From: Octopus bimaculoides
Lineage: Eukaryota
NCBI RefSeq assembly: GCF_001194135.2
Contig: NC_068986.1
Coordinates: 80,265,850-80,329,849 of the forward strand
DNA: 64,000 bases
Direction of reading: 5' to 3'
The notes beneath the pieces are model-generated. The model was not told the origin of the DNA, made no database searches, and worked only from the letters and a program-made list of their open reading frames with translations. A program made the translations under genes and the position numbers. Position 1 is the first letter of the stretch. Every line of letters begins with the position of its first letter. This document shows positions 4,888 through 63,342 of this stretch, piece by piece.

Positions 4888-5006
4888 TCTAGTCTAGTCC
4901 TATGAACACATCCAGGACTAAGACACTTGATTAGATGTCTTGCAAACAACTTGACACATCTAATCGAGTGTCTTAGTCCTGGATGTGCTCATAGGACTAG
5001 ACTAGA
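4888..5006. repeat. Near-perfect inverted repeat (51-bp arms, 17-nt loop)
   Basis: Arms 4888-4938 and 4956-5006 differ at 2 of 51 positions. Confidence 0.95.
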
Positions 5007-17906: not shown

Positions 17907-20192
17907 CTGAAAGAAGATAATAAAAAAAAATTCTTAGAACAGGGACAAAAATATAAAAAAAATAAGCACCACACAAAAACACTTCTTTGTTACACATGCA
18001 AGATTTTCAGGGATAGAAAAATAAGATTAACGACATAAAAAAAAGCAATACATAAACAACAACTTATTTTATATAAATTGGGGTGGTTGTATGGTTAGAA
18101 ACTTTGATTTCCAACCACATGGTCCTGGATTCAGTTCCCAGCAAGTGTCTTCTACTAAAGCCTTGGGCTGACCAAAGCTCTGTGAGTTCTCTTGGAAGAA
18201 GGAAACTGCAAGAAACCTCTCTCTCTCTCTCCAGATGGAAAGCTCAAATAATCAAGCCTCTATAGCCCTCCACCTATCTCTTTCCTGTGCCAGTCTGCAC
18301 AGTTCTGCAAAACCTCTGCCACTAGTTCTTTGATTTTATCACTAAATCTGGTTTTAGGTCTTCCTCATGCTTCCTATTGACCCTACACCAGAAGCTCTCA
18401 ACATGAGCAATGCTACCCTGAAGGGGGCACTGGGCATATCAAAGGAATCATTAAGGCTTTATGGGGCAATGAGGTAACATAATTAACATACTAAATTTTA
18501 CCTATAGTAGTAATTATATAATACATGATAAAAAACTAGTAATGGTTATTAAAATAAAATGGGATCTCATAAGGCACAGGGAAGTCATTAACTTATAATG
18601 TATAAAGTAAATTTACAACTTTTGTCTTTATTAATTTTTTATCATTTCACTGTTAAAAGCTTATACAATCCATTTTTAGAGTAAAATTTATAAATTATCA
18701 TCAGTGTTAATTTAGTTTAGTCATGATACTGCATTTGCCACTTAGGTGTGTGCTGGGCATAACAACTACTTAAAGAGTGGGAGCTACAAAAAAAAAAAAA
18801 GTTTAAGGGCCACTGCCCTATGCAAATCCATTTTTACCTCTGGGAAGGAGTGATCCTTATTAGTCTGCCCTCTATGCTTTGACCTGACCAGCATAGACAA
18901 CCCTACCAGGAACTTGCATTCTGCTGACATAGTTCTCAGTCACTCAGGCAAATAAACCACCACATCACAAGGACTGGGTTATTTTGTTGTGGCACTGATT
19001 AACTTTGTAAGCATAAAATGAAAGCAAACAAAAATATGAAACTTAACCAAACTTTTGAACATATTTCTCTGCTCTGCTTAATGAGCCAGGCACCAGAGGA
19101 ATGGGAAATGGTTTTCTAACCTGTCTAGGAGAGCGGTAATTCAGATTAAGAACTAACTCAAACTTTAATGACCTGCTTAATTTCTACTAGCATGGAAAAC
19201 AGATGTAAAATGAGGACAATGATATCATATATACCATTCTTTCATTTGTTTTACAGCCATTTTACCATGCTAGCATGGGTTAGGTGGAATATATTAAGGC
19301 ATTGTTTTACAGATGAAGGTCTTTTTTATGTTGCTAACCCTTACCAGTTTTTCAAGTAAAGGATCTCTTATTCCACATCTTAAAAAGTCAGTCTCACACA
19401 AACACATACATTACATATATGTGACGGAGTCTGTACTGTAGGTTTCCTTCAGTTTCCACTTACCAAATCCACTCACATGGCTTTGGTTGACCCAGGAAGA
19501 CTGAACCTAAAACTTAACTTCACAAATCACACAGCCATATCTCTACTTAAATATCACTACTTTACAAATTCACTAAGTCTAATTGGCATAATAGTCAACT
19601 TAATGATGATGATGAGATAGATATATATGTATATCATATTTATGTACATATATATCATACACTAAACACATAATCAACATATGTGAACAACTTTTGTTTT
19701 TGTTTTTGGAAGTGCCAAATGTGTTTCGAATTATACAGACAAGAAAGTAATATTTCAAATGTAGTATAGCTGCAAAAGCAGCAAAAAGACTGGTTATTTT
19801 ACCTTTATAAGATGGAAAAAGTTTTGTCTGTATAATATGAAATACATTCAATGCTTCCCAAAACACAAAAAAAGTTTGTTTACATATGTTGTTGCAGTCC
19901 AAAAATGCCATATTTAGAATTTAATTTGATGGAGATTGCTGTCAGTGGGCAGTTCAGTTTAATGGTAGAGTACTCAGCCAGCATCTGAGAGGTGCAGGTT
20001 CAAGTCCCATGGCTGCCTGCTAGCAGCTTTTGACATCTTATAAGGGTACAATACCCAATCTTTCTGCTGTTTTCACAGTATACTGCATTCAAAATATTAC
20101 TTTGTCTGTATTATACATTCATAATTATACTATGACAAATAAAGTGGTAATAGAATAATAGATATAATAGAAAAGCAGTTCATTATTCTTAC

Positions 20193-30325: not shown

Positions 30326-30642
30326 TGGGAAAATTTCGAACTTGGGTTCCCATTCCTAAGGTATTTTTTGATGTTGTTGTTATTATTATTATTATTAAGG
30401 TCACTGCCTGGAATCAAAGTCAGAATCTTGGGGTTAGTAGCCTGTGCTCTTAACCACTATGCCATATGCTCATGGGCATATGGCACAGTGGTTAAGAGCA
30501 CGGGCTACTAACCCCAAGATTCCAAATTCAATTCCAGGCAGTGACCTGAACAACAACGGCAACAACAACGGCAGCGACGATGACAACAACAACAAAAAAA
30601 AAGTACCTGAGGAATGAGAACCCAGCTTCAAAATTTCCCCAA

Positions 30643-40629: not shown

Positions 40630-41525
40630 TGGTCGTTGTTTAATGTCTGCTTTCCATGATGGCAAGCTAGAAGGCTGCACCAGGCTCCAATCTGATCTGG
40701 CAAAGTTTCTACAGGTGGATGCTCTTCCTAACGCCAACCACTCTGAGAATGTAGTGGGTGCTTTGTCATGCTTCACCACCTCATCCCAGGTTTTCCTGGA
40801 TCTACCTCTTCCACAGGTTCCCTCTACTGCTAAGGTGTGACACTTTTTTGCACAGCTGTCCTCATCCATTCACAACACATGACCATACCAGCGCAGTCGT
40901 CTCTCTTGCACATCACATCTGATGTTTCTTCAGTCCAACTTTCCTCTCTGTTGTGCAAGTACACTGGCATTACACATCCAGCAGAGCATACTTGCTTCAT
41001 TCCTTGCAAGCTTACGCATGTCCACAGCAGTCACGGTCCATGCGTCAAACAATCTACCTTTTACTCTGAGTGAGAGGCCTTTTCTCTCTAGCAGAGGTAG
41101 GAGCTCTCTGAACTTTGCCCATACTATTCTTATTCTAGCAGCTACACTTTCAGAGCATCCAACCCCGCAACTGACTTGGTCACCTAGATAATGGAAGCTA
41201 TCAACTACTTGTAGTTTTTTCCCCTGGAATGTGATGGAAGCTGTTGTCTTCACATTTTCAGTGTTTATTGGTCCTGAGCATTTGTCACACACAAAAACTA
41301 TCTTTCCAGTTAGCCTTCCTTTGATATTGTTGCACTTCTTATGTGTCCATAGCTTACACTGGGTATATTTTATGGAGTTTCTACCTACGCCTTTTCTACA
41401 AATCAAGCAGGGCCATCTACCTGAATGGATTTGTGGCTTGTCTGCCTTCCTACTTATTAAGACTTTGGCTTTTGCTAGGTTGATTCTAAGGCCCTTCAAT
41501 TCTAGACCTTGCTTTCATACCTGAA
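40630..41525 (-). mobile_element. RTE-clade LINE 3' fragment (ORF2 C-terminus and tail)
   Basis: KGLRINLAKAKV...VVDSFHYLGD...ARIRIVWAKFRELLPLL...GRGRSRKTWDEVV; the 3' tail is shared with many other copies. Confidence 0.9.
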
Positions 41526-49565: not shown

Positions 49566-49814
49566 GTACTACTGAAGCAGCGTGGTTCCGAACGCGCAGT
49601 CGCGCGTCCGAGGTAGCTAGTCGCGAGTGGTCGATCCAACAAAAAGTGTGCGTGTGCGCGCGTGCAAATGAATACGTGTTTAGGGTTAGGGTTAGGATTG
49701 ACCACTCACGACTAGCTAGCGCGGACGCGCGACCGCGCGTTCGGGACCACGCTGCTTTAGTAGGTACTACTAAAGCAGAGTGGTCCCGAACGCGCAGTCG
49801 CGCGTCCGAGGTAG
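49566..49814. repeat. CpG-rich ~72-bp unit in alternating orientation (foldback array) with a TTAGGG spacer
   Basis: Forward unit 49566-49637, reverse unit 49695-49767, then a forward unit running into the N gap. Confidence 0.8.
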
Positions 49815-52529: not shown

Positions 52530-53234
52530 GGGATCTATTTTAAAACGGGGGCCACAGTTTTCATTAATGTTTTACGTAGTGTTTTTAGTACCGAAAGACT
52601 TTCAAACTTCGTATACTTATCTATTTTGTGTTATAGAACAGAAAAATATTTTTGTATTCGAATTTATTTCATGTAAAAAATTGTCTTATTTCGATAATTT
52701 CAACCAATCACTGACAAGTATTCGGTTGTTTATATTTACTCCTTTGGCTGATTAAGCGGTGTAAAGTGTATTTAATATTTGCTTTTTCATTTTAAATTTG
52801 CTTTTTTCATTTTCTTTTTTTTTTCTTCGTTTTATTTGCCTTTTTGTTTTTAAATTTGCTGTTTTACCCTAACCCTAACCCTAGGGTTAGGGTTAGGGTT
52901 AGGGTTAGCCTATAATAGAAAGGTTTATTAGCTACTGCCAATATGCTTCAGCCATTTTTTGACAAGGAAATAATAATTTTATCACCGATAGAATTGTTTC
53001 AGAATCGTTTGTTTATGTAGTCGGCACTTAATGTATATCGGCTGAATGGACGTCAGTGATTGGTTGAAATTACAGAAATACGACAACTTTAACATGGAAT
53101 AACTTAGGGATTTCTTTTTTATTTTAAGAAGACTAAGAGAAAAAGATGTTTTATATGACACATTCTACCAGTGTTCCAAGTTTCAAAGTGTTTCGTTAAG
53201 AAAATACTGTGGTCCCCGTTTTAAAATAGATCCC
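52530..53234. mobile_element. 705-bp non-autonomous TIR element with a 6-bp TSD and a central telomeric palindrome
   Basis: 28-bp TIR GGGATCTATTTTAAAACGGGG(G/A)CCACAG with 1 mismatch; AGCAAA duplicated at 52524-29 and 53235-40. Confidence 0.88.
52866..52908. repeat. Interstitial telomeric repeats, (CCCTAA)n abutting (TTAGGG)n
   Basis: taccctaaccctaaccctagggttagggttagggttagggttag. Confidence 0.9.
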
Positions 53235-55249: not shown

Positions 55250-55520
55250 AAAATTACTTCCTGGAAAATTCCGAACAGGGGGGGTTACTTCCTGAAAAGT
55301 TCCGAGGAGGAAGGGACGAATTACTTCTTTGAAATTTCCAAGGAAGGGGAGGGGGAGGAATTATTCATGGAAAGTTCCGAGGAAGGGGTGAATTAATTCC
55401 TGAAAAGTTCCGAGGAGGGGGAGGAATTACTTCCTTGAAAATTCAAAGAAAGGGGAGGAGAGGGAGGAAATACTTCATGGAAAGATCAGGGTGGAGCGAA
55501 TTACTTTCTGGAAAGTTCCC
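55250..55520. repeat. Minisatellite A (~33-42-bp degenerate unit TTACTTCCTGGAAAGTTCCGAGG...), ~8 units; shorter related array at 56125-56212
   Basis: Visible tandem periodicity. Confidence 0.8.
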
Positions 55521-55559
55521 CTTGTCTTAGCGGTTAAGCAATGGCGATCGATAAAATGT

Positions 55560-56118
55560 CAGACAGAGAGAAACGAAAAGAGAGAGAAAAAGAGACAGAG
55601 AGTGAGACAGAGAGAGAGCGAGCGACACAGAGAAAGAGAGACAGAGGAAGAGAAAGAGTGACAGACATCGAGAGATAGAGAGAGAGAGACAGAGAAAGAG
55701 AGAGACATAGAAAGAGAGAGACAGACAGACAGAGAGAGAGAGAGACAGAGAGAAAAGGGAGAGAGAGAGAGAGAAAAAGAGAGAGAGGAGAAGAAAGAGA
55801 CACAGAGAGAGACAGAGAGTGAGAGAGAGAGACAGAAACAGAGTGAGAGAGAGACAGAGAAAGAAACAGAGTGAGAGAGAGACAGATAGAGAGAGTCAGA
55901 GCGGGAGAGAGAGAGGCAGAGAGACAAGCAGAGAGAGAGAGACACACACACACAGAGTGAGAGACAGAGGGAGAGAAAGAGAGAGATAGACACAGAGAGA
56001 GAGAGAAAGGGAGAGAGAGAGAAAGAGATAGAGAAAGGGAGAGAGAGAGACAGAGAGATGCAGAGAAAGACAGAGTGAGAAACAGAGAGTGTGAGAGATA
56101 GAGACAGAGAGAGTGAGA
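55560..56118. repeat. Cryptic (GA)n/(GACA)n microsatellite; a second block lies at 57108-57332
   Basis: Direct inspection. Confidence 0.95.
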
Positions 56119-56212
56119 CGGAAATACGTAATTCCTGGAAATTTCCAAGGACTTCCTGGAAAGTTTCGAGGATTTCATGGAAAGTTCCTAGGATTTCATG
56201 GAAAGTTCCGAA

Positions 56213-57108
56213 GATAGAAAATGTCAATGTAACTTAGCGGTTCGGCAATTGATATCGATAAAATGTCCCGTAACTTAGCGGTTCGGCAATGGATATCGAT
56301 AAAATGTCCCAAAGAATTTAGAGGATCGGCAATGGAGATCGATTAAATGTCCCCTGAACTTAGCAGATCGGCAATGAACATCGATGAACTGTTCCCGTAA
56401 TTTAGCGATTCTGCAATGGAGATCGATAAAATGTCCCCGAAACATAGCGGTTCGGCAATGGAGATCGATAAAATGTCCCCGTTATTTAGCGGTTCGGTAA
56501 TGGAGATCGATAAAAAGTCTCCGTACCTTAGCGGTTCGGCAATGGAGATCGATAAAAAGTACCCGTATCTCAGCGGTTCGGCAATGGAGATCAATAAAAG
56601 TACCCGTATCTTAGCGGTTCGGCAATGGAGATCGATAAAATGTCAATGTAACTTAGCGGTTCGGCAATGGAGATCGATAAAATGTCCGCGTAACTTAGCG
56701 GTTCGGCAATGGAGATCGATAAAATCTCCACATAACCTAGCGGTTCGGCAATGGAGATCGATGAAATGTCCCCGTAACTTAGCGGTTCAGCAAGAGAGAT
56801 CGATGAAATACCCACATAATCTAGCGGTTCGGGAATGAGGATCGATAAAATGTCACCGTAACTTAGCGGTTCGGCAAGAGAGATCGATGAAATACCCACA
56901 TAATTTAGCGGTTCGGCAATGAGGAACGATAAAATGACCCCCGTAATCTAGCGGTTCGGCAATGAAGATCGATGAAATGTACCCGTAACTTAGCGGTACG
57001 GCAATAGAGATCGATAAAATGTCCACGTAACTTAGCGGTTCAGCAAAGCAGATCGAAAAATTGTCCCCTTAACTGAGTGGTTCAGCAATAGCGATCGATA
57101 AAATGTCA
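56213..57108. repeat. Minisatellite B, 41-43-bp unit AACTTAGCGGTTCGGCAATGGAGATCGATAAAATGTCCCCGT, ~21 copies
   Basis: Units start at 56231, 56272, 56315 and so on. Confidence 0.95.
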
Positions 57109-57332
57109 GACAGAGAGAGAGCGAAAAAGAGAGACAGAGACAGAGAGAGGGAGAAAGACACACAGAGAGACAGACAGCGAGAGAAACACAGAGAGAGAGA
57201 CAGAGCGAGAGAAAGAGAGAGACAGAGACAGACACATGCAGAGAGAGAGAAAGAGGGAGAGAGAGAAAGAGAGAGATAAAGAAAGAGAAAGAGAAAGAGT
57301 AACAGAGAGAGAGAGAGAAAGCGACAGAGGAA

Positions 57333-58878
57333 GAGTTCGTTCGTTCGTTATTTCGTCATTTCGTTCGTTCGATATTTGGTTCGATCGTTCGTTATTTCGT
57401 TCGTTTGTTCGTTCGTTCGTTCGTTCGTTCGTTATTTCGTTCATTTATTCATTTGCTCGTTCGTTATTTAGTTCGTTCATTCGTTCGTTATTTCGTTCGA
57501 TCGTTCGTTCGTTATTTCTTTCCTTCGTTCGTTTGTTCGTTCGTTCTTTCATTCTTTCGTTATTTCTTTCGTTCGTTATTTCGTTCGTTCGTTCGCTATT
57601 TCGTTCGTTCATTCGTCCATTATATCGTTCGTTCGTTCTTTATTTCGTTCGTTCGTTCGTTCGATCGTTATTTCGTTCGATCGTTCGTTCGTTACTTCCT
57701 TCGTTCGTTATTTCGTTCGTTCGTTATTTCGTTCGTTCGTTAGTTCGTTAGTTCGTTCGTTCGTTCGTTATTTCGTTAGTTCATTCGTTCGATCATTCGT
57801 TCGTTCGTTCGTTCGTTATTTCGTTCGTTCGATATTTTGTTCATTTGTTCGTTCGTTCGTTCGTTATTCAGTTCGTTGTTTCGTTATTTCGTTCAGACGT
57901 TCGTTCGTTATTTCGTTCATTCGTTTGTTCCTTCGTTCGGTCGTACGTTCGTTATTTCGTTCGTTCGTTCGTTCATTATTTCGATCGTTCGTTCATTCGT
58001 TCATTGGATATTTTGTTCGTTCGATCGTTCATTCGTTCGACAGTTCCTTCGTTTTTTCATTCGTTCGTTATTTCGTTCGTTCGTTATTTCGTTCGTTCAN
58101 NNNNNNNNNNNNNNNNNNNNNNNNNNNNNNNNNNNNNNNNNNNNNNNNNNNNNNNNNNNNNNNNNNNNNNNNNNNNNNNNNNNNNNNNNNNNNNNNNNNN
58201 NNNNNNNNNNNNNNNNNNNNNNNNNNNNNNNNNNNNNNNNNNNNNNNNNNNNNNNNNNNNNNNNNNNNNNNNNNNNNNNNNNNNNNNNNNNNNNNNNNNN
58301 NNNNNNNNNNTTCGTTCGTTCATTATTTCGATCGTTCGTTCATTCGTTCATTGGATATTTTGTTCGTTCGATCGTTCATTCGTTCGACAGTTCCTTCGTT
58401 TTTTCATTCGTTCGTTATTTCGTTCGTTCGTTATTTCGTTCGTTCATTCGTTATTTCGTTCGTTCTTTCGTGAATTTGTTCATTCGTTCGCTATTTCGTT
58501 CGATCGTTCGTTCGTTATTTCCTTCGTTCGTTATTTCGTTCGTTCGTTGGTTCGTTCGTTCGTTATTTCGTTCGTTCGTTCGTTATTTCGTTCTTTCGCA
58601 CGTTCATTCGGTATTTCGTCCGTTCGTTCCTTCGTTATTTCGATCATTCGTTCGTTATTTCATTTGTTCGTTCGTTATTTAGTTCGTTCGTTCGTTCGTT
58701 ATTTCGATTGTTCATTCTTTCATTCGTTCGTTTGATATTTCGTTCGTTCATTCGGTCCCTATTTTGTTCGTTCATTCAATCGTTCGTTATTTCGTTCGTT
58801 TGTTATTTCGTTTGTTCGTTATTTCGTTCGTTCCTACGTTTGTTCGTTATTTCATACGTTCGTTATTTCGTACGTTCA
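57333..58878. repeat. Cryptic (TTCG)n / TTATTTCGTTCG satellite
   Basis: Direct inspection; interrupted by an N gap. Confidence 0.95.
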
Positions 58879-58978
58879 NNNNNNNNNNNNNNNNNNNNNN
58901 NNNNNNNNNNNNNNNNNNNNNNNNNNNNNNNNNNNNNNNNNNNNNNNNNNNNNNNNNNNNNNNNNNNNNNNNNNNNNN

Positions 58979-59011
<33 letters not shown>

Positions 59012-59229
59012 CGAGAGAGAGAGAGAGAATAGGATAGAATAATAAATCAAATGAGGAAAGCTTCTAACAGTGTTGAGATGAAAGTTGAAAAACCTCTATA
59101 TATTTCCAGTGTTTTCAACCTTCTATTTTTTACATCTATTTTCCTCCCGTCTTTTCTTATATTTTCTCTTCAAAAGAGTACAGTCAAAAAAATGTGTGTC
59201 TGCGTAGATCCTACCATTTGGATAGCCGG

Positions 59230-60410
59230 ATGGGTGGTAACCCCGTTTTATTCCAGTGCTTGTGCCAAGAGCTTTTGAGTGTTTTACTGTAATAGGTCGG
59301 TTTAAGAACATTAAGAATAAGCATAGGGATAGATTCACTCAGTTCGATACTACAGATTTTTTTCCCTCTGTACTGTGATCATTGCTTGATAAGGCGATTG
59401 AATTTAGTAAATCACATGTTGATATAGACCCTGTAAACTGTGACTTTATCATGCATGCGAAAAAATGGATAAAACAAAGTTGGATTCTGATGAATTGTTC
59501 GATGTATCGATGGGATCATACGACAGTACTCACATCTGCGATCTTGTAGGTTTCTTTGTGCTAAGCACATTGAGATCCAAATACTCATCCCAGGACGTCA
59601 GTCTATACAGAGACGATGGATTAAGTATTTGCTATGGCTGTGTTGGTCACACACTAGATAAATTTAGGAAACAAATCATCTCTGCCTTTAGTCAATCTGT
59701 CAAAAGTCAATTTTTTAAAAGATGTTTCTCTAGAGCTAAACTCTTCCTCTTATAAACCTTACCATAAGCCGAACGAGAAACTTCCCTACATATACAAACA
59801 TTCTCGTCACCTCCCCATAGTGTTTAAACACCTGATAGTCAACATTGCAACAGAATATCTAACCCTTCTTCTAAAGACATTTTTGAGAAGGTAGCCCCTA
59901 TCACAACAATGCCCAAGCCAATAGAGGCTTTAATGACGAACTAATTTACAACCCCTCTAGTAATAATACAAATAACAAAAATAGACTTTAAAATAGACTT
60001 AGGAGAATAATTTAGTTTGCCCCCGCTCCTTTTTCCTTAATGTTAAAACCAACATAGGTAAAAAAAATTCCTGTTTCTCTTAGACGAACATTTACCCGTA
60101 AATCACAGGTGCAGAAAAATATTCATCAGGCGTTCAGTCAAATTATCATGTAGCTGCTGTCTCAATATGAAGAGCATTATTTTTCGCAAACACCACCAAG
60201 AACCTACTTCCAGTTTTAACTGTCGAGACCCAGGAACCTGTCCACTCGTCCAGGGGTGCATGCCTAAATCCGTCATATATGAAGCAGAAGTTACAGCAAC
60301 GCTAAATGAAAGCATAACCGAAAAGAAGAGTTACATCGGGTTATGTGAAGGTGACTTCAAAAATCGCTATGCTGACCTCATATCTTTCTTCCGGTACAGG
60401 GGAAAAAATA
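59230..60410 (+). mobile_element. Decayed Penelope-like retroelement (RT + GIY-YIG endonuclease)
   Basis: RT motifs QFDTTDFFPS, FDVSMGSYDSTHICDLVG, LYRDDGL. C-terminal NCR...CPL..C...VIYEAEV...YIGLCEGDFKNRY (GIY-YIG). Multiple frameshifts. Confidence 0.88.
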
Positions 60411-62134
60411 AAGTCACACCACATACAATCAAATAAACAATAGTTGAAATGTCCACACCATATGTTAACGAATCAAAAATTGTAAGCTATATGTAGCTGA
60501 AAAATCCCAGATCATTTTCAGATTTAAGAACTTCACAATACTGCTGAATTCTAGAACTGAAATTTTCAGCGTATGTAAACACATGAATAAGTTCCTGTTG
60601 GCGAATTGGAAAATACCAACCTCCCTGGATTGTGTAATTGTACTGCAGACTCTTGGCCCCTATCTTTTCAGCCTTATGACTTTACGGTCAAAAGAGAGAT
60701 AACTCTAACTCTAACCTTAATTTTTTTCCTTTTCGTTTCGTTTTTCCAGTGTTTTCAACCTTCCACCATTTACATTTATTTTCTTCTCATATTTTCTTGT
60801 ATCTTCTCTTATTTTACCGTTTTAGCTTGTTATGCCATGTACGCAGTGTGAAGATTGCGTTAAGGCACCAGGCGTATTATAAAATGCTGTCTGAGTTGTT
60901 TTCATCTCATGAAACAATTAGTAACTCATAGAAATATATACTATGTTTATTAAGCAATATTTATCTCTCACCAGATTGAGTATTTGTTGTTGACTTTAGC
61001 TTCATGGGTCAATATACTACATACGCGCGCGCGCGCATATATATATTATTTTGGTCAGTCTCCTGTTGCTCTGAGCTTCGCCTGTGGCTACACAGGATCC
61101 TCATGCAAGTTATGATTGAAAATTGCAGTATTTGTTCATCTATTTATAGGTTTCTTGTCATTGAGTGCGGTGGTGGCGAATGACTCGACCAAAATCATTC
61201 AACTACGGTAGTAGTTGAATAATATTCTTAAGGCTGCAATTTACACACACGCAGCCTATTTCAGACTTTGTCGCTAACTCAGTTCTCAACCAAATTGAAA
61301 GCTGTTAACATTTTTGGAGAGGACTGGTCCCTAGCTACATTTTGGCATAAAAAAATGAGATTTGGTCCAGTAGAAAAAGGTTTACATCAAAATTTGTAGC
61401 AACGTTATAGGAGAGTAAGTAACGCCTCCAATCAAGTTTAGATCCAAATAACTTTTTTTTATTTTAAAAGCAAAATATAAAAGAAAGCATGAGGAATTTC
61501 ATAGTTTTTGTCCAAATGTTTGTATCAAAAAAGTTGTGAGGTAAAATATCCTGACAAAATATAAGGCAAAAAATTAGATTTAAGTATCATTAACTTTTTT
61601 TATTTTGAAAACAAGACATATTCTAATTAAGCTCAAACGATAGGGCTCAATTCGAGGAATTTCATGGCATCAATCTCATGCAATGAAGTTCTAAAAGAAA
61701 AAAGTTATGAGTGTTTGTTTCTCAAATTTGAGGGTGATGATATAGTTCTATACTTTTTTATGAATATAGTTCTATGAGGGGACTTTTAATATATGTCACC
61801 GGCAACACTGAGGTAAGGAAAAAATTATCAACGACACCGCGAGGAATTTCATAGTTTTGGTCCCATTACATTAAATATTTTTTTTTTGTTTTTATATATC
61901 AATTAAAAAATAAAATTTACGCACTCAAATCTTTCACATTCATAATTTCATTGACAATTAACTCGCTTTCGGATTGGAATTCTAAATACTACAATTTTAA
62001 AATAAATTAAACAAGTTTGTTTAATAATCCAATTTTTCAGCTGTCCAATGACTGGTTGGTGGGGGATTACTTGCTTTCATAAATAACTTCATATTAATTT
62101 TTTCTTTAAACAACCTAAATTATTCAATAAAATA

Positions 62135-62217
62135 TAGCTACTCGTGACTGTCTCTATGAGCAGCACTGAGTCATGTAGTAGGGTTGTTCAGAAAAGGCAC
62201 AATTTTAAGTGTTTATA
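62135..62217 (+). ncRNA. Conserved hairpin A1 (candidate pri-miRNA or snoRNA-like RNA)
   Basis: Paralog of A2 and A3; stem GAGCAG/TTGTTC. Confidence 0.4.
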
Positions 62218-62403
62218 GTTTATATTACTTTTAATTTTAATTTTAAATTTATTTATTAGCAATGAAGTTATTTATATGCTTTGATAAATTATGTCATTGA
62301 CCAATGTTAATCAATTTAAATTTATTACATAACACAAGTGTTTATTTTCATTTCAATTAGCAACAATTATTATTATTTTCATTAACACAAGATCTATGTG
62401 ACT

Positions 62404-62475
62404 TAAGGTGAGCCTAGTCACTGAAAATTTTGGGTTCTTGCAATTTGTTATCGTTTGGTGAGCCATGTTGCAAAT
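62404..62475 (+). ncRNA. Conserved hairpin B1
   Basis: Stem TCACTGAA/TTTGGTGA; paralog of B2. Confidence 0.4.
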
Positions 62476-62640
62476 TCAAGATGATGATTATATTGTAGTT
62501 GTTGTTGCTTGTTATGAAATCAATAAATTCTTGCTTATAAATATGCATATAATTTATTAATAATTGCAAGAAAATAAATTTGCATAATTTTTTGTTTTAT
62601 CTTTATTTTCTTTAAAATTCCAAATTCACTTGATAGAATA

Positions 62641-62727
62641 TAGACATTTCTGGTTGTGTCTCTATGGGCAGTACTGAAGTCATGTAGTAAGACTCTTCAG
62701 AAAAGGAATTAGTCAAAAGTGCTTATA
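62641..62727 (+). ncRNA. Conserved hairpin A2
   Basis: Stem GGGCAG/CTCTTC, inner stem TACT/AGTA. Confidence 0.4.
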
Positions 62728-62985
62728 TTTTACAACCTATTTTTAAACTTTAATATTTAATTAATAAAGTTATTTGTAAAATGCTGATGCACTTAAGTAA
62801 GTTTAACTTTTATTATTAATTTTCACTTTCAGCCTTACTTGCTTTCTACGTTTTTTTTTGTTTTTTTTGCTAATTTCTTTTTAGTTGCTTCCCTTTTTCT
62901 TTTAAGCTAATTATTTAATCAGGCAAGTTCATTAATCTTTTATATGCTTCAGATATACATATCTAATTTTATTGGGGAAAGAATA

Positions 62986-63071
62986 TAGTCATTTTTGGCT
63001 GTGTTTCTATGGGCAGTCTGAAGGCATGTAGTAAGGCTGTCCTGAAAAGGCATTGTTATAAAGTGATTATA
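62986..63071 (+). ncRNA. Conserved hairpin A3
   Basis: Stem GGGCAG/CTGTCC, basal stem TAGTCATTTT/AAAGTGATTA. Confidence 0.4.
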
Positions 63072-63268
63072 TTCTAAACTTATTATTTAATACCGAAATT
63101 AATTTAAAAGGATTTTCATATATCAGTTTTTGTATTATGGGAATGTAGGTAATTTTCACTTGTATATATGCGCTATGCTTTCATAATTACTGTTGTATTG
63201 AATCATTATTGATATATCTAGAGCAGCAGCAGTCATTGCTATTATCACCAACTAAAAATCAAGGTTAA

Positions 63269-63342
63269 TTAAGGTGAACCTGGTAACTGATGGTTTTGGG
63301 TCTTGTTTGTAACCGATTGGTGAGCCGTGGTGCAACCTTTAA
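63269..63342 (+). ncRNA. Conserved hairpin B2
   Basis: Stems ACTGATGGTT/AACCGATTGGT and TAAGGT/ACCTTTA. Confidence 0.4.

Follow-up and report, generated by a model that had tools for sequence, protein, structure and literature searches.

A tandem array of plus-strand RNA hairpins in Octopus bimaculoides: a plausible but unproven clustered miRNA-like family

Conserved islands of an AT-rich tandem array

We found three paralogous islands of one family (A1, A2 and A3) and two of another (B1 and B2) in the 64-kb stretch of Octopus bimaculoides DNA that was analysed (hereafter the window). The five islands follow one another in the order A1-B1-A2-A3-B2 over about 1.2 kb (Table 1). The A islands share 77-85% pairwise identity and align with z = 14-22 against shuffles, whereas their 100-nt flanks align with z < 2, save for the block downstream of A1 and A3 in which family B sets in. 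AT-richness marks the final 2 kb of the window (28% GC), and the spacers between the islands are repetitive, with 15-30% GC. In a sensitive self-comparison, a few blocks of 10-12 nt were seen to persist in these spacers; together with the shared unit order, they indicate that whole units were duplicated. The A islands are thus what has stayed conserved after an old tandem duplication at this locus. Two motifs are identical in all three aligned copies: CATGTAGTA, which lies in the terminal loop of the hairpin described below, and GAAAAGG. A first-pass annotation, made from the letters alone, had placed three conserved islands here among unalignable AT-rich spacers and had pointed to the invariant CATGTAGTA; our alignments bear this out, with the extents of the islands slightly wider than first given.

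A covariance model built from family A (R1) finds three copies in the window, all within 1 kb and all on the plus strand. A scan of metagenomes with the pattern CTATGRGCAG-N7-10-CATGTAGTA returned eight matches, which are chance matches because none of them fits R1. An exact-protein look-up of five small open reading frames over or near the islands returned none on record.

B1 and B2 share 79% identity, B1 following A1 and B2 following A3 at a distance of 135-150 nt; after A2, family B is present as a degenerate trace only. The conserved span of B starts at an AG that follows a T-rich tract, contains two 5' splice-site-like motifs, stops about 12 nt past the second of them (TTG/GTGAGCC), and has stop codons in all plus-strand frames. 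B may be a noncoding exon of about 100 nt in a host transcript, with an alternative donor, and its motifs would then be a second, independent pointer to transcription of the plus strand. We also considered B as a second hairpin family and rejected this, as B1 and B2 have no structure in common on either strand (consensus fold -8 kcal/mol, z -1.3 to -1.6); B2 alone forms a weak hairpin (-20.2 kcal/mol, z -1.6).

The spacers carry further repeated blocks. One of them, present three times, consists of TAATTTTCACTT followed after 6-14 nt by TGCTTTC(ATAA), and a related block, TTTATATGCTT, is found twice. The first copy of the former adjoins a CCAAT and a ATAAATAA motif just upstream of A1, a stretch that could be a promoter or branch-site region, or chance. 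Just upstream of the whole cluster lie three copies of a block, GAGGAATTTCAT(A/G)G, that is found nowhere else in the window. Some 3.5 kb of low-complexity tandem repeats (8- and 12-nt periods, (CT)n and (TA)n), with several N gaps, divide the cluster region from the remaining window, and the assembly of the window as a whole contains N gaps and many repeats. Telomere-type interstitial repeats occur at two sites, one of which is a head-to-head CCCTAA/TTAGGG palindrome. The sole Rfam match at gathering threshold in the whole window is a tRNA-like element (30.1 bits, against the Rfam tRNA threshold of 29); ARAGORN calls no tRNA there, and the element is probably a tRNA-derived SINE or a pseudogene.

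Table 1. Features of the A/B array and of the surrounding window. A slash within a motif marks the splice-site-like border.
Feature	Position	Strand	Remarks
Hairpin A1	62128-62222	+	Weakest copy: 12 consensus differences in paired columns
Hairpin A2	62634-62732	+	Paralogue of A1 and A3
Hairpin A3	62980-63075	+	Sole thermodynamically convincing copy; 35 bp, 14-nt terminal loop, 4x5 internal loop
CATGTAGTA	62172-62180 (A1), 62681-62689 (A2), 63025-63033 (A3)	+	Invariant, in terminal loop
GAAAAGG	62191-62197 (A1), 62700-62706 (A2), 63044-63050 (A3)	+	Invariant
Island B1	62359-62474	+	AG 62359-62360; AAG/GTGAGCC (GT 62408); TTG/GTGAGCC (GT 62458)
Island B2	63225-63335	+	AG 63225-63226; AAG/GTGAACC (GT 63274); TTG/GTGAGCC (GT 63320)
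Trace of B after A2	about 62860-62960		Degenerate
TAATTTTCACTT spacer block	62067-62082, 62817-62846, 63150-63186	+	Three copies
TTTATATGCTT spacer block	62271, 62939		Related to the preceding block
CCAAT	62045-62049		Upstream of A1
ATAAATAA	62079-62086		Upstream of A1
GAGGAATTTCAT(A/G)G block	61472-61513, about 61645-61680, 61822-61863	+	Three copies
Broken transposon	59250-60440	+	1.7 kb upstream of the cluster
Low-complexity tandem repeats	55500-59040		Several N gaps
Telomere-type repeats	52855-52910, 49680-49700		Interstitial
Palindromes	4895-4997, 30418-30525, 49711-49810		Near-perfect, about 100 nt; probably foldback or MITE-type repeats
Transposon ORF	40930-41499	-	Matches reverse-transcriptase proteins
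tRNA-like element	19948-20018	+	Probably a tRNA-derived SINE or pseudogene

A shared hairpin of the plus strand

RNAalifold folds the three A copies into one unbranched hairpin of 32 pairs, made up of a basal stem of 16, a middle stem of 6 and an upper stem of 10 pairs and closed by a 14-nt loop. The basal stem proposed in the first-pass annotation is part of this consensus. Standard pairs occupy 92.6% of the sequence-by-pair cells; shifting the 3' side by 1-3 columns lowers this share to 45-49%. A1 and A2 each keep 29 of the 32 consensus pairs. Three column pairs (4/98, 35/65 and 40/60) show a full stepwise compensatory series across the three paralogues (A-U, G-U, G-C or C-G, U-G, U-A); pair 18/84 has also changed on both sides, but in a gappy region, giving three or four double changes in all. 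The earlier examples of stems that keep pairing through different sequences are borne out: GAGCAG and TTGTTC pair at 6/6 positions with two G.U pairs, GGGCAG and CTCTTC pair with one C.C mismatch, and GGGCAG and CTGTCC pair perfectly.

Shuffling of the alignment columns matched the observed covariation in 44 of 500 trials, three sequences giving such a comparison little power. We also simulated neutral change, starting from the consensus and giving each copy its observed paired-column substitutions, with transitions at twice the rate of transversions. Broken cells number 7 in the alignment, against 13.5 +/- 2.3 in the simulation (P 0.004), and pairs that changed on both sides and still pair number 4, against 0.54 (P 0.001); both P values are optimistic and partly circular, because the structure was derived from the same alignment.

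The pairing is strongly asymmetric between the strands. A DNA palindrome that decays neutrally is expected to show G.U and A.C equally, whereas family A has seven G.U pairs per copy and shows G.U in 13 paired columns against A.C in 2 (one-sided binomial P about 0.004 versus neutral palindrome decay). On the minus strand, the consensus structure has an energy of +1.2 kcal/mol in A1, +5.5 in A2 and -4.2 in A3. R1 scores the family at 98-111 bits on the plus strand and 13-19 bits on the minus strand (97.7 vs 13.1 for A1; 110.9 vs 15.7 for A2). The true palindromes of the window provide the contrast, as they fold at -72 to -86 kcal/mol equally on both strands: that at 4895-4997 reaches -71.6 kcal/mol on one strand and -73.7 on the other, that at 30421-30520 reaches about -84 on both, and each of these two has equal R1 scores on the two strands. 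On the G.U/A.C asymmetry, the minus-strand energies, the R1 asymmetry and the contrast with symmetric palindromes, the A hairpins are RNA-type structures of the plus strand. The plus-strand bias of the G-U pairs reported in the first pass holds accordingly, and a plus-strand RNA hairpin family with maintained pairing is supported.

Thermodynamic stability is unevenly distributed among the copies. The minimum free energy (MFE) structure of A3 (-37.2 kcal/mol) is also its centroid, with z -6.3 and 0 of 200 shuffles as good, and its minus strand reaches -10.4 kcal/mol (z -0.1). A1 (-19.3 kcal/mol, z -0.4) and A2 (-18.1 kcal/mol, z 0.0) fold no better than shuffles; their MFE shape is still the long hairpin, and in their ensembles the basal stem alone is stable. 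Thus, the three stem-loops of the first-pass annotation share a pairing register, and A3 is the one for which thermodynamics agrees. With about 35 bp in an unbranched stem, AT-rich single-stranded flanks and a 14-nt loop, the predicted fold of A3 matches a Microprocessor substrate in its geometry; its MFE per length per GC is about 1.0. An unbranched, imperfect stem of about 35 bp with single-stranded flanks, as expected of a miRNA, is convincing in A3 only. Among the terminal-loop columns, 12 of 14 are invariant, an excess over the island average that is not significant by our own estimate (P about 0.1).

A miRNA-like reading and its rivals

Our reading, held tentatively and at somewhat below an even chance, is that A1-B1-A2-A3-B2 is a polycistronic plus-strand transcript with miRNA-like hairpins, A3 being the competent one. 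The tandem array would be transcribed as one primary transcript, in which the A islands would be paralogous pri-miRNA-like hairpins. Drosha and Dicer would release a duplex of about 22 nt from A3, and A1 and A2 would be weaker paralogues that keep the pairing register and may undergo little processing or none. Islands B1 and B2 would probably be short noncoding exons of the host, the repeated unit consisting of an intron with a hairpin plus an exon. We infer transcription, Drosha/Dicer processing, the choice of the mature arm and the exon nature of B from the DNA alone. The earlier proposal of candidate novel miRNAs is plausible for the predicted hairpin A3, with its 35 bp and low z; A1 and A2 are weak hairpins.

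Several lines of evidence favour this reading. Conservation is sharp-edged and stops exactly at the hairpin base. One 32-pair hairpin fits all copies, with three compensatory series and fewer broken pairs than in the neutral simulation. G.U exceeds A.C and A3 folds on the plus strand only, while the palindromes in the window are strand-symmetric. All copies share one strand and a span of 1 kb, an arrangement known from polycistronic miRNA clusters, and the 5' splice-site-like motifs in B indicate the plus strand too. GAAAAGG is invariant at the predicted 3p seed, and the sequence 3' of it is variable. Finally, many new miRNA families are known from the Octopus lineage (PMC9699675), in agreement with the first-pass statement that coleoids gained many lineage-specific ones.

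The predicted cleavage registers of A3 are less favourable. With a Drosha cut 13 bp above the basal junction, GAAAAGG would form nucleotides 2-8 of a 3p product starting at 63043; this product would have its 5' end in the 4x5 internal loop, a position that should promote its loading. This basal register has the shared seed, yet 13 paired duplex positions (a MirGeneDB-style criterion is at least 16), and the apical register, 22 bp from the apical junction and with predicted arms at about 62998-63019 and 63034-63056, has 17 paired positions, yet lacks the shared seed. Each plausible register therefore fails one expectation, which argues against a miRNA. The same is true of the z of about 0 in A1 and A2, which is unusual in real pre-miRNAs, though these copies are conserved as well as A3, and of the terminal loop and one internal loop, which are conserved as much as the arms. 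When the A copies are read directly, neither a conserved basal UG nor a conserved downstream CNNC is present. Covariation support from three sequences is weak (44/500), and the neutral simulation is partly circular.

Rfam 15, run over the whole window at gathering thresholds, gives no family match at the A islands, and the best matches of a permissive search are noise (DdR6, 21 bits against a gathering threshold of 90; mir-6130, 17 bits against 117). No Rfam miRNA model reaches threshold; the first-pass annotation had likewise recognised no known miRNA. Deep small-RNA annotation of O. vulgaris and O. bimaculoides reported 94 genes in 90 novel families, with no scaffold common to two novel families (PMC9699675); an expressed three-copy family would have stood out in that work, which counts against a miRNA. 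So does the outcome for those rows of the paper's supplementary tables that we covered, seed rows included, where we found neither the island motifs nor any of six candidate seed sites.

Alternatively, a plus-strand transcript, be it intron, UTR or lncRNA, might carry the A hairpins as structured cis-elements that are bound by protein or serve as ADAR substrates and are not cut by Drosha or Dicer, which we regard as a minority possibility of some weight. The recognition surfaces would be the invariant loop CAUGUAGUA and the internal loop CUAU / GAAA. This would suit the position of the terminal and internal loops among the best-conserved parts, although the loop does not significantly exceed the average conservation of the islands, and A1 and A2, conserved yet weak, fit a constraint on sequence plus modest structure. 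In animals, however, tandem same-strand hairpins of about 100 nt and about 35 bp are mostly miRNA genes, and the known elements do not match: by eye, IRE, SECIS, histone stem-loop and K-turn do not fit, and Rfam finds nothing. A comparison by eye that extended to the Sm site, Y RNA and vault RNA gave no candidate that fits all three copies, with Rfam in agreement; a AUUUUUGG Sm-like string occurs in A3 only. Hairpin ADAR substrates are reported to be abundant in octopus introns and 3' UTRs, and the supplementary rows of the same paper that we covered contain no miRNA with the candidate seeds (PMC9699675), both of which favour a cis-element.

Only slightly less likely than this, in our estimate, is that the A islands are remnants of foldback elements or MITEs, or simply the more complex portion of tandemly duplicated DNA in neutral decay. 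In that case the hairpin would derive from terminal inverted repeats, and the spacers would be unalignable only through fast slippage of AT-rich, low-complexity DNA. Indeed, the basal stem of A3 can be read as terminal inverted repeats matching at 14/16 positions, with TATA on both sides in all copies; TATA is self-complementary, however, so that what looks like a target-site duplication may just as well belong to the stem. The low GC content and repetitiveness of the spacers, in which residual blocks show whole-unit duplication, agree with a neutral origin, and, given a recent duplication and faster-changing spacers, an island divergence of 15-23% need not reflect strong constraint. The window is also full of repeats and true palindromes. 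Against this, the 64-kb window has only three copies, which share one strand and a span of 1 kb, and there are fewer broken and more compensatory pairs than the neutral simulation yields. The 13 G.U columns against 2 with A.C and the strand-asymmetric folding set the family apart from the real palindromes of the window. Equal folding of both strands is expected of a MITE or foldback element, and A3 folds at -37.2 kcal/mol on the plus strand against -10.4 on the minus strand. A MITE origin would in any case be compatible with a derived miRNA.

A distinctly improbable version of the host-gene idea is that the locus is a noncoding host gene of repeated units, each with exon B and an intron whose lineage-specific hairpin A lies outside the current octopus miRNA catalogues. 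Such a gene would be built like the mammalian C19MC or SNORD115/116 arrays, and its units might run on past the end of the window.

The A islands are very unlikely to be tandemly duplicated exons in which a hairpin pairs their own splice sites. Each island does begin just past TATAG and end at AA/GTG, but indels of 1 and 2 nt separate the copies, and all plus-strand frames contain stops. The 3' site has no pyrimidine tract, and on a rough position matrix the 5' site (AA/GTGNTT) reaches about 3 bits, where the motifs in B reach 9-12.6. We rejected the exon reading for its weak splice signals and a coding reading for the indels and in-frame stops.

The least credible alternative, which we consider hardly worth retaining, is that the A islands are snoRNA-like guide RNAs, either H/ACA with a single hairpin or C/D of a non-canonical kind. 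Each hairpin has ANANNA-like and AUA motifs at its two ends, as the first-pass annotation had observed, CUGA/CAGA tetramers occur inside, and there is a very weak match to the Dictyostelium C/D model DdR6 (E 1.1-5.4). The motifs do exist, but they lie inside the basal stem and are base-paired (pairs 3-11 with 91-99); the columns of the would-be pseudouridylation pocket (19-23 and 78-83) are the least conserved, a second hairpin is absent, and no Rfam family reaches threshold. The H-box/ACA layout suggested earlier therefore fails. For the C/D version, AUGAGCA or AUGGGCA stands in place of a RUGAUGA C box, a D-like CAGA box is found in A1 and A2, and the box-like strings lie 15-20 nt away from the terminal stem.

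We also noticed that 14 nt of A2 (TCTCTATGGGCAGT, 62655-62668) are shared with the Ion Torrent P1 adapter, which accounted for the only full-text motif matches. We take this as coincidence and reject contamination, given the divergence among the three copies and the absence of any further adapter sequence.

Relation to known hairpin families

To our knowledge, coleoid cephalopods are the sole invertebrate lineage with an expansion of miRNA families on the vertebrate scale. Family A is plausible but unproven as a new clustered family of miRNA-like hairpins. If it is one, three paralogues at differing stages of hairpin quality stand side by side; if it is not, the locus still illustrates, within a small span, how selection acts on a hairpin at the RNA level in a genome full of repeats. 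The locus is also a concrete one for testing how well structure-only evidence predicts processing.

Lineage-specific clustered miRNA families that arose by tandem duplication include vertebrate mir-430 and primate C19MC. Family A resembles these in its stem of about 35 bp in A3, its place in a lineage with a burst of new miRNA families and, if B is an exon, in a C19MC-like unit of intronic hairpin plus short noncoding exon. It differs from them in the low thermodynamic stability of two of its three copies and in a loop conserved to the same degree as the arms, and the family is known here from DNA. Hairpins of about 100 nt on one strand, spaced by a few hundred bases and separated by diverged spacers, are features shared with mir-430 and C19MC and with the coleoid 'Novel' MirGeneDB families (PMC9699675). 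As a miRNA family, it would nevertheless represent an unusual, tandem and clustered mode of miRNA birth for coleoids, because coleoid families, including nearly all published octopus novel ones, are reported to be almost wholly single-copy and unclustered (PMC9699675).

Likeness to box H/ACA snoRNAs is limited to a hairpin with internal loops and to the ANANNA-like and AUA-like triplets near its ends; family A departs from them in its paired motifs, single hairpin, unconserved pocket and lack of an Rfam match. Among miRNAs of transposon origin, the hairpins of the human mir-548 family are derived from MADE1 elements, a kind of MITE. The A element is likewise a short palindrome, whose ends resemble inverted repeats and whose flanks are rich in TA. 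In contrast to mir-548/MADE1, the A copies are few and local in the window and have many G.U pairs on one strand only.

Two transposon-related features lie elsewhere in the window. The broken transposon upstream of the cluster contains ORF fragments that we take, by eye, to be reverse-transcriptase-like (FDTTDFFPS) and GIY-YIG-like (VIYEA...YIG), as in Penelope-like elements; its 96-aa ORF has no Pfam match and a single homologue, with 45% identity. The transposon ORF on the minus strand matches reverse-transcriptase proteins of O. vulgaris and O. bimaculoides with 63-86% identity.
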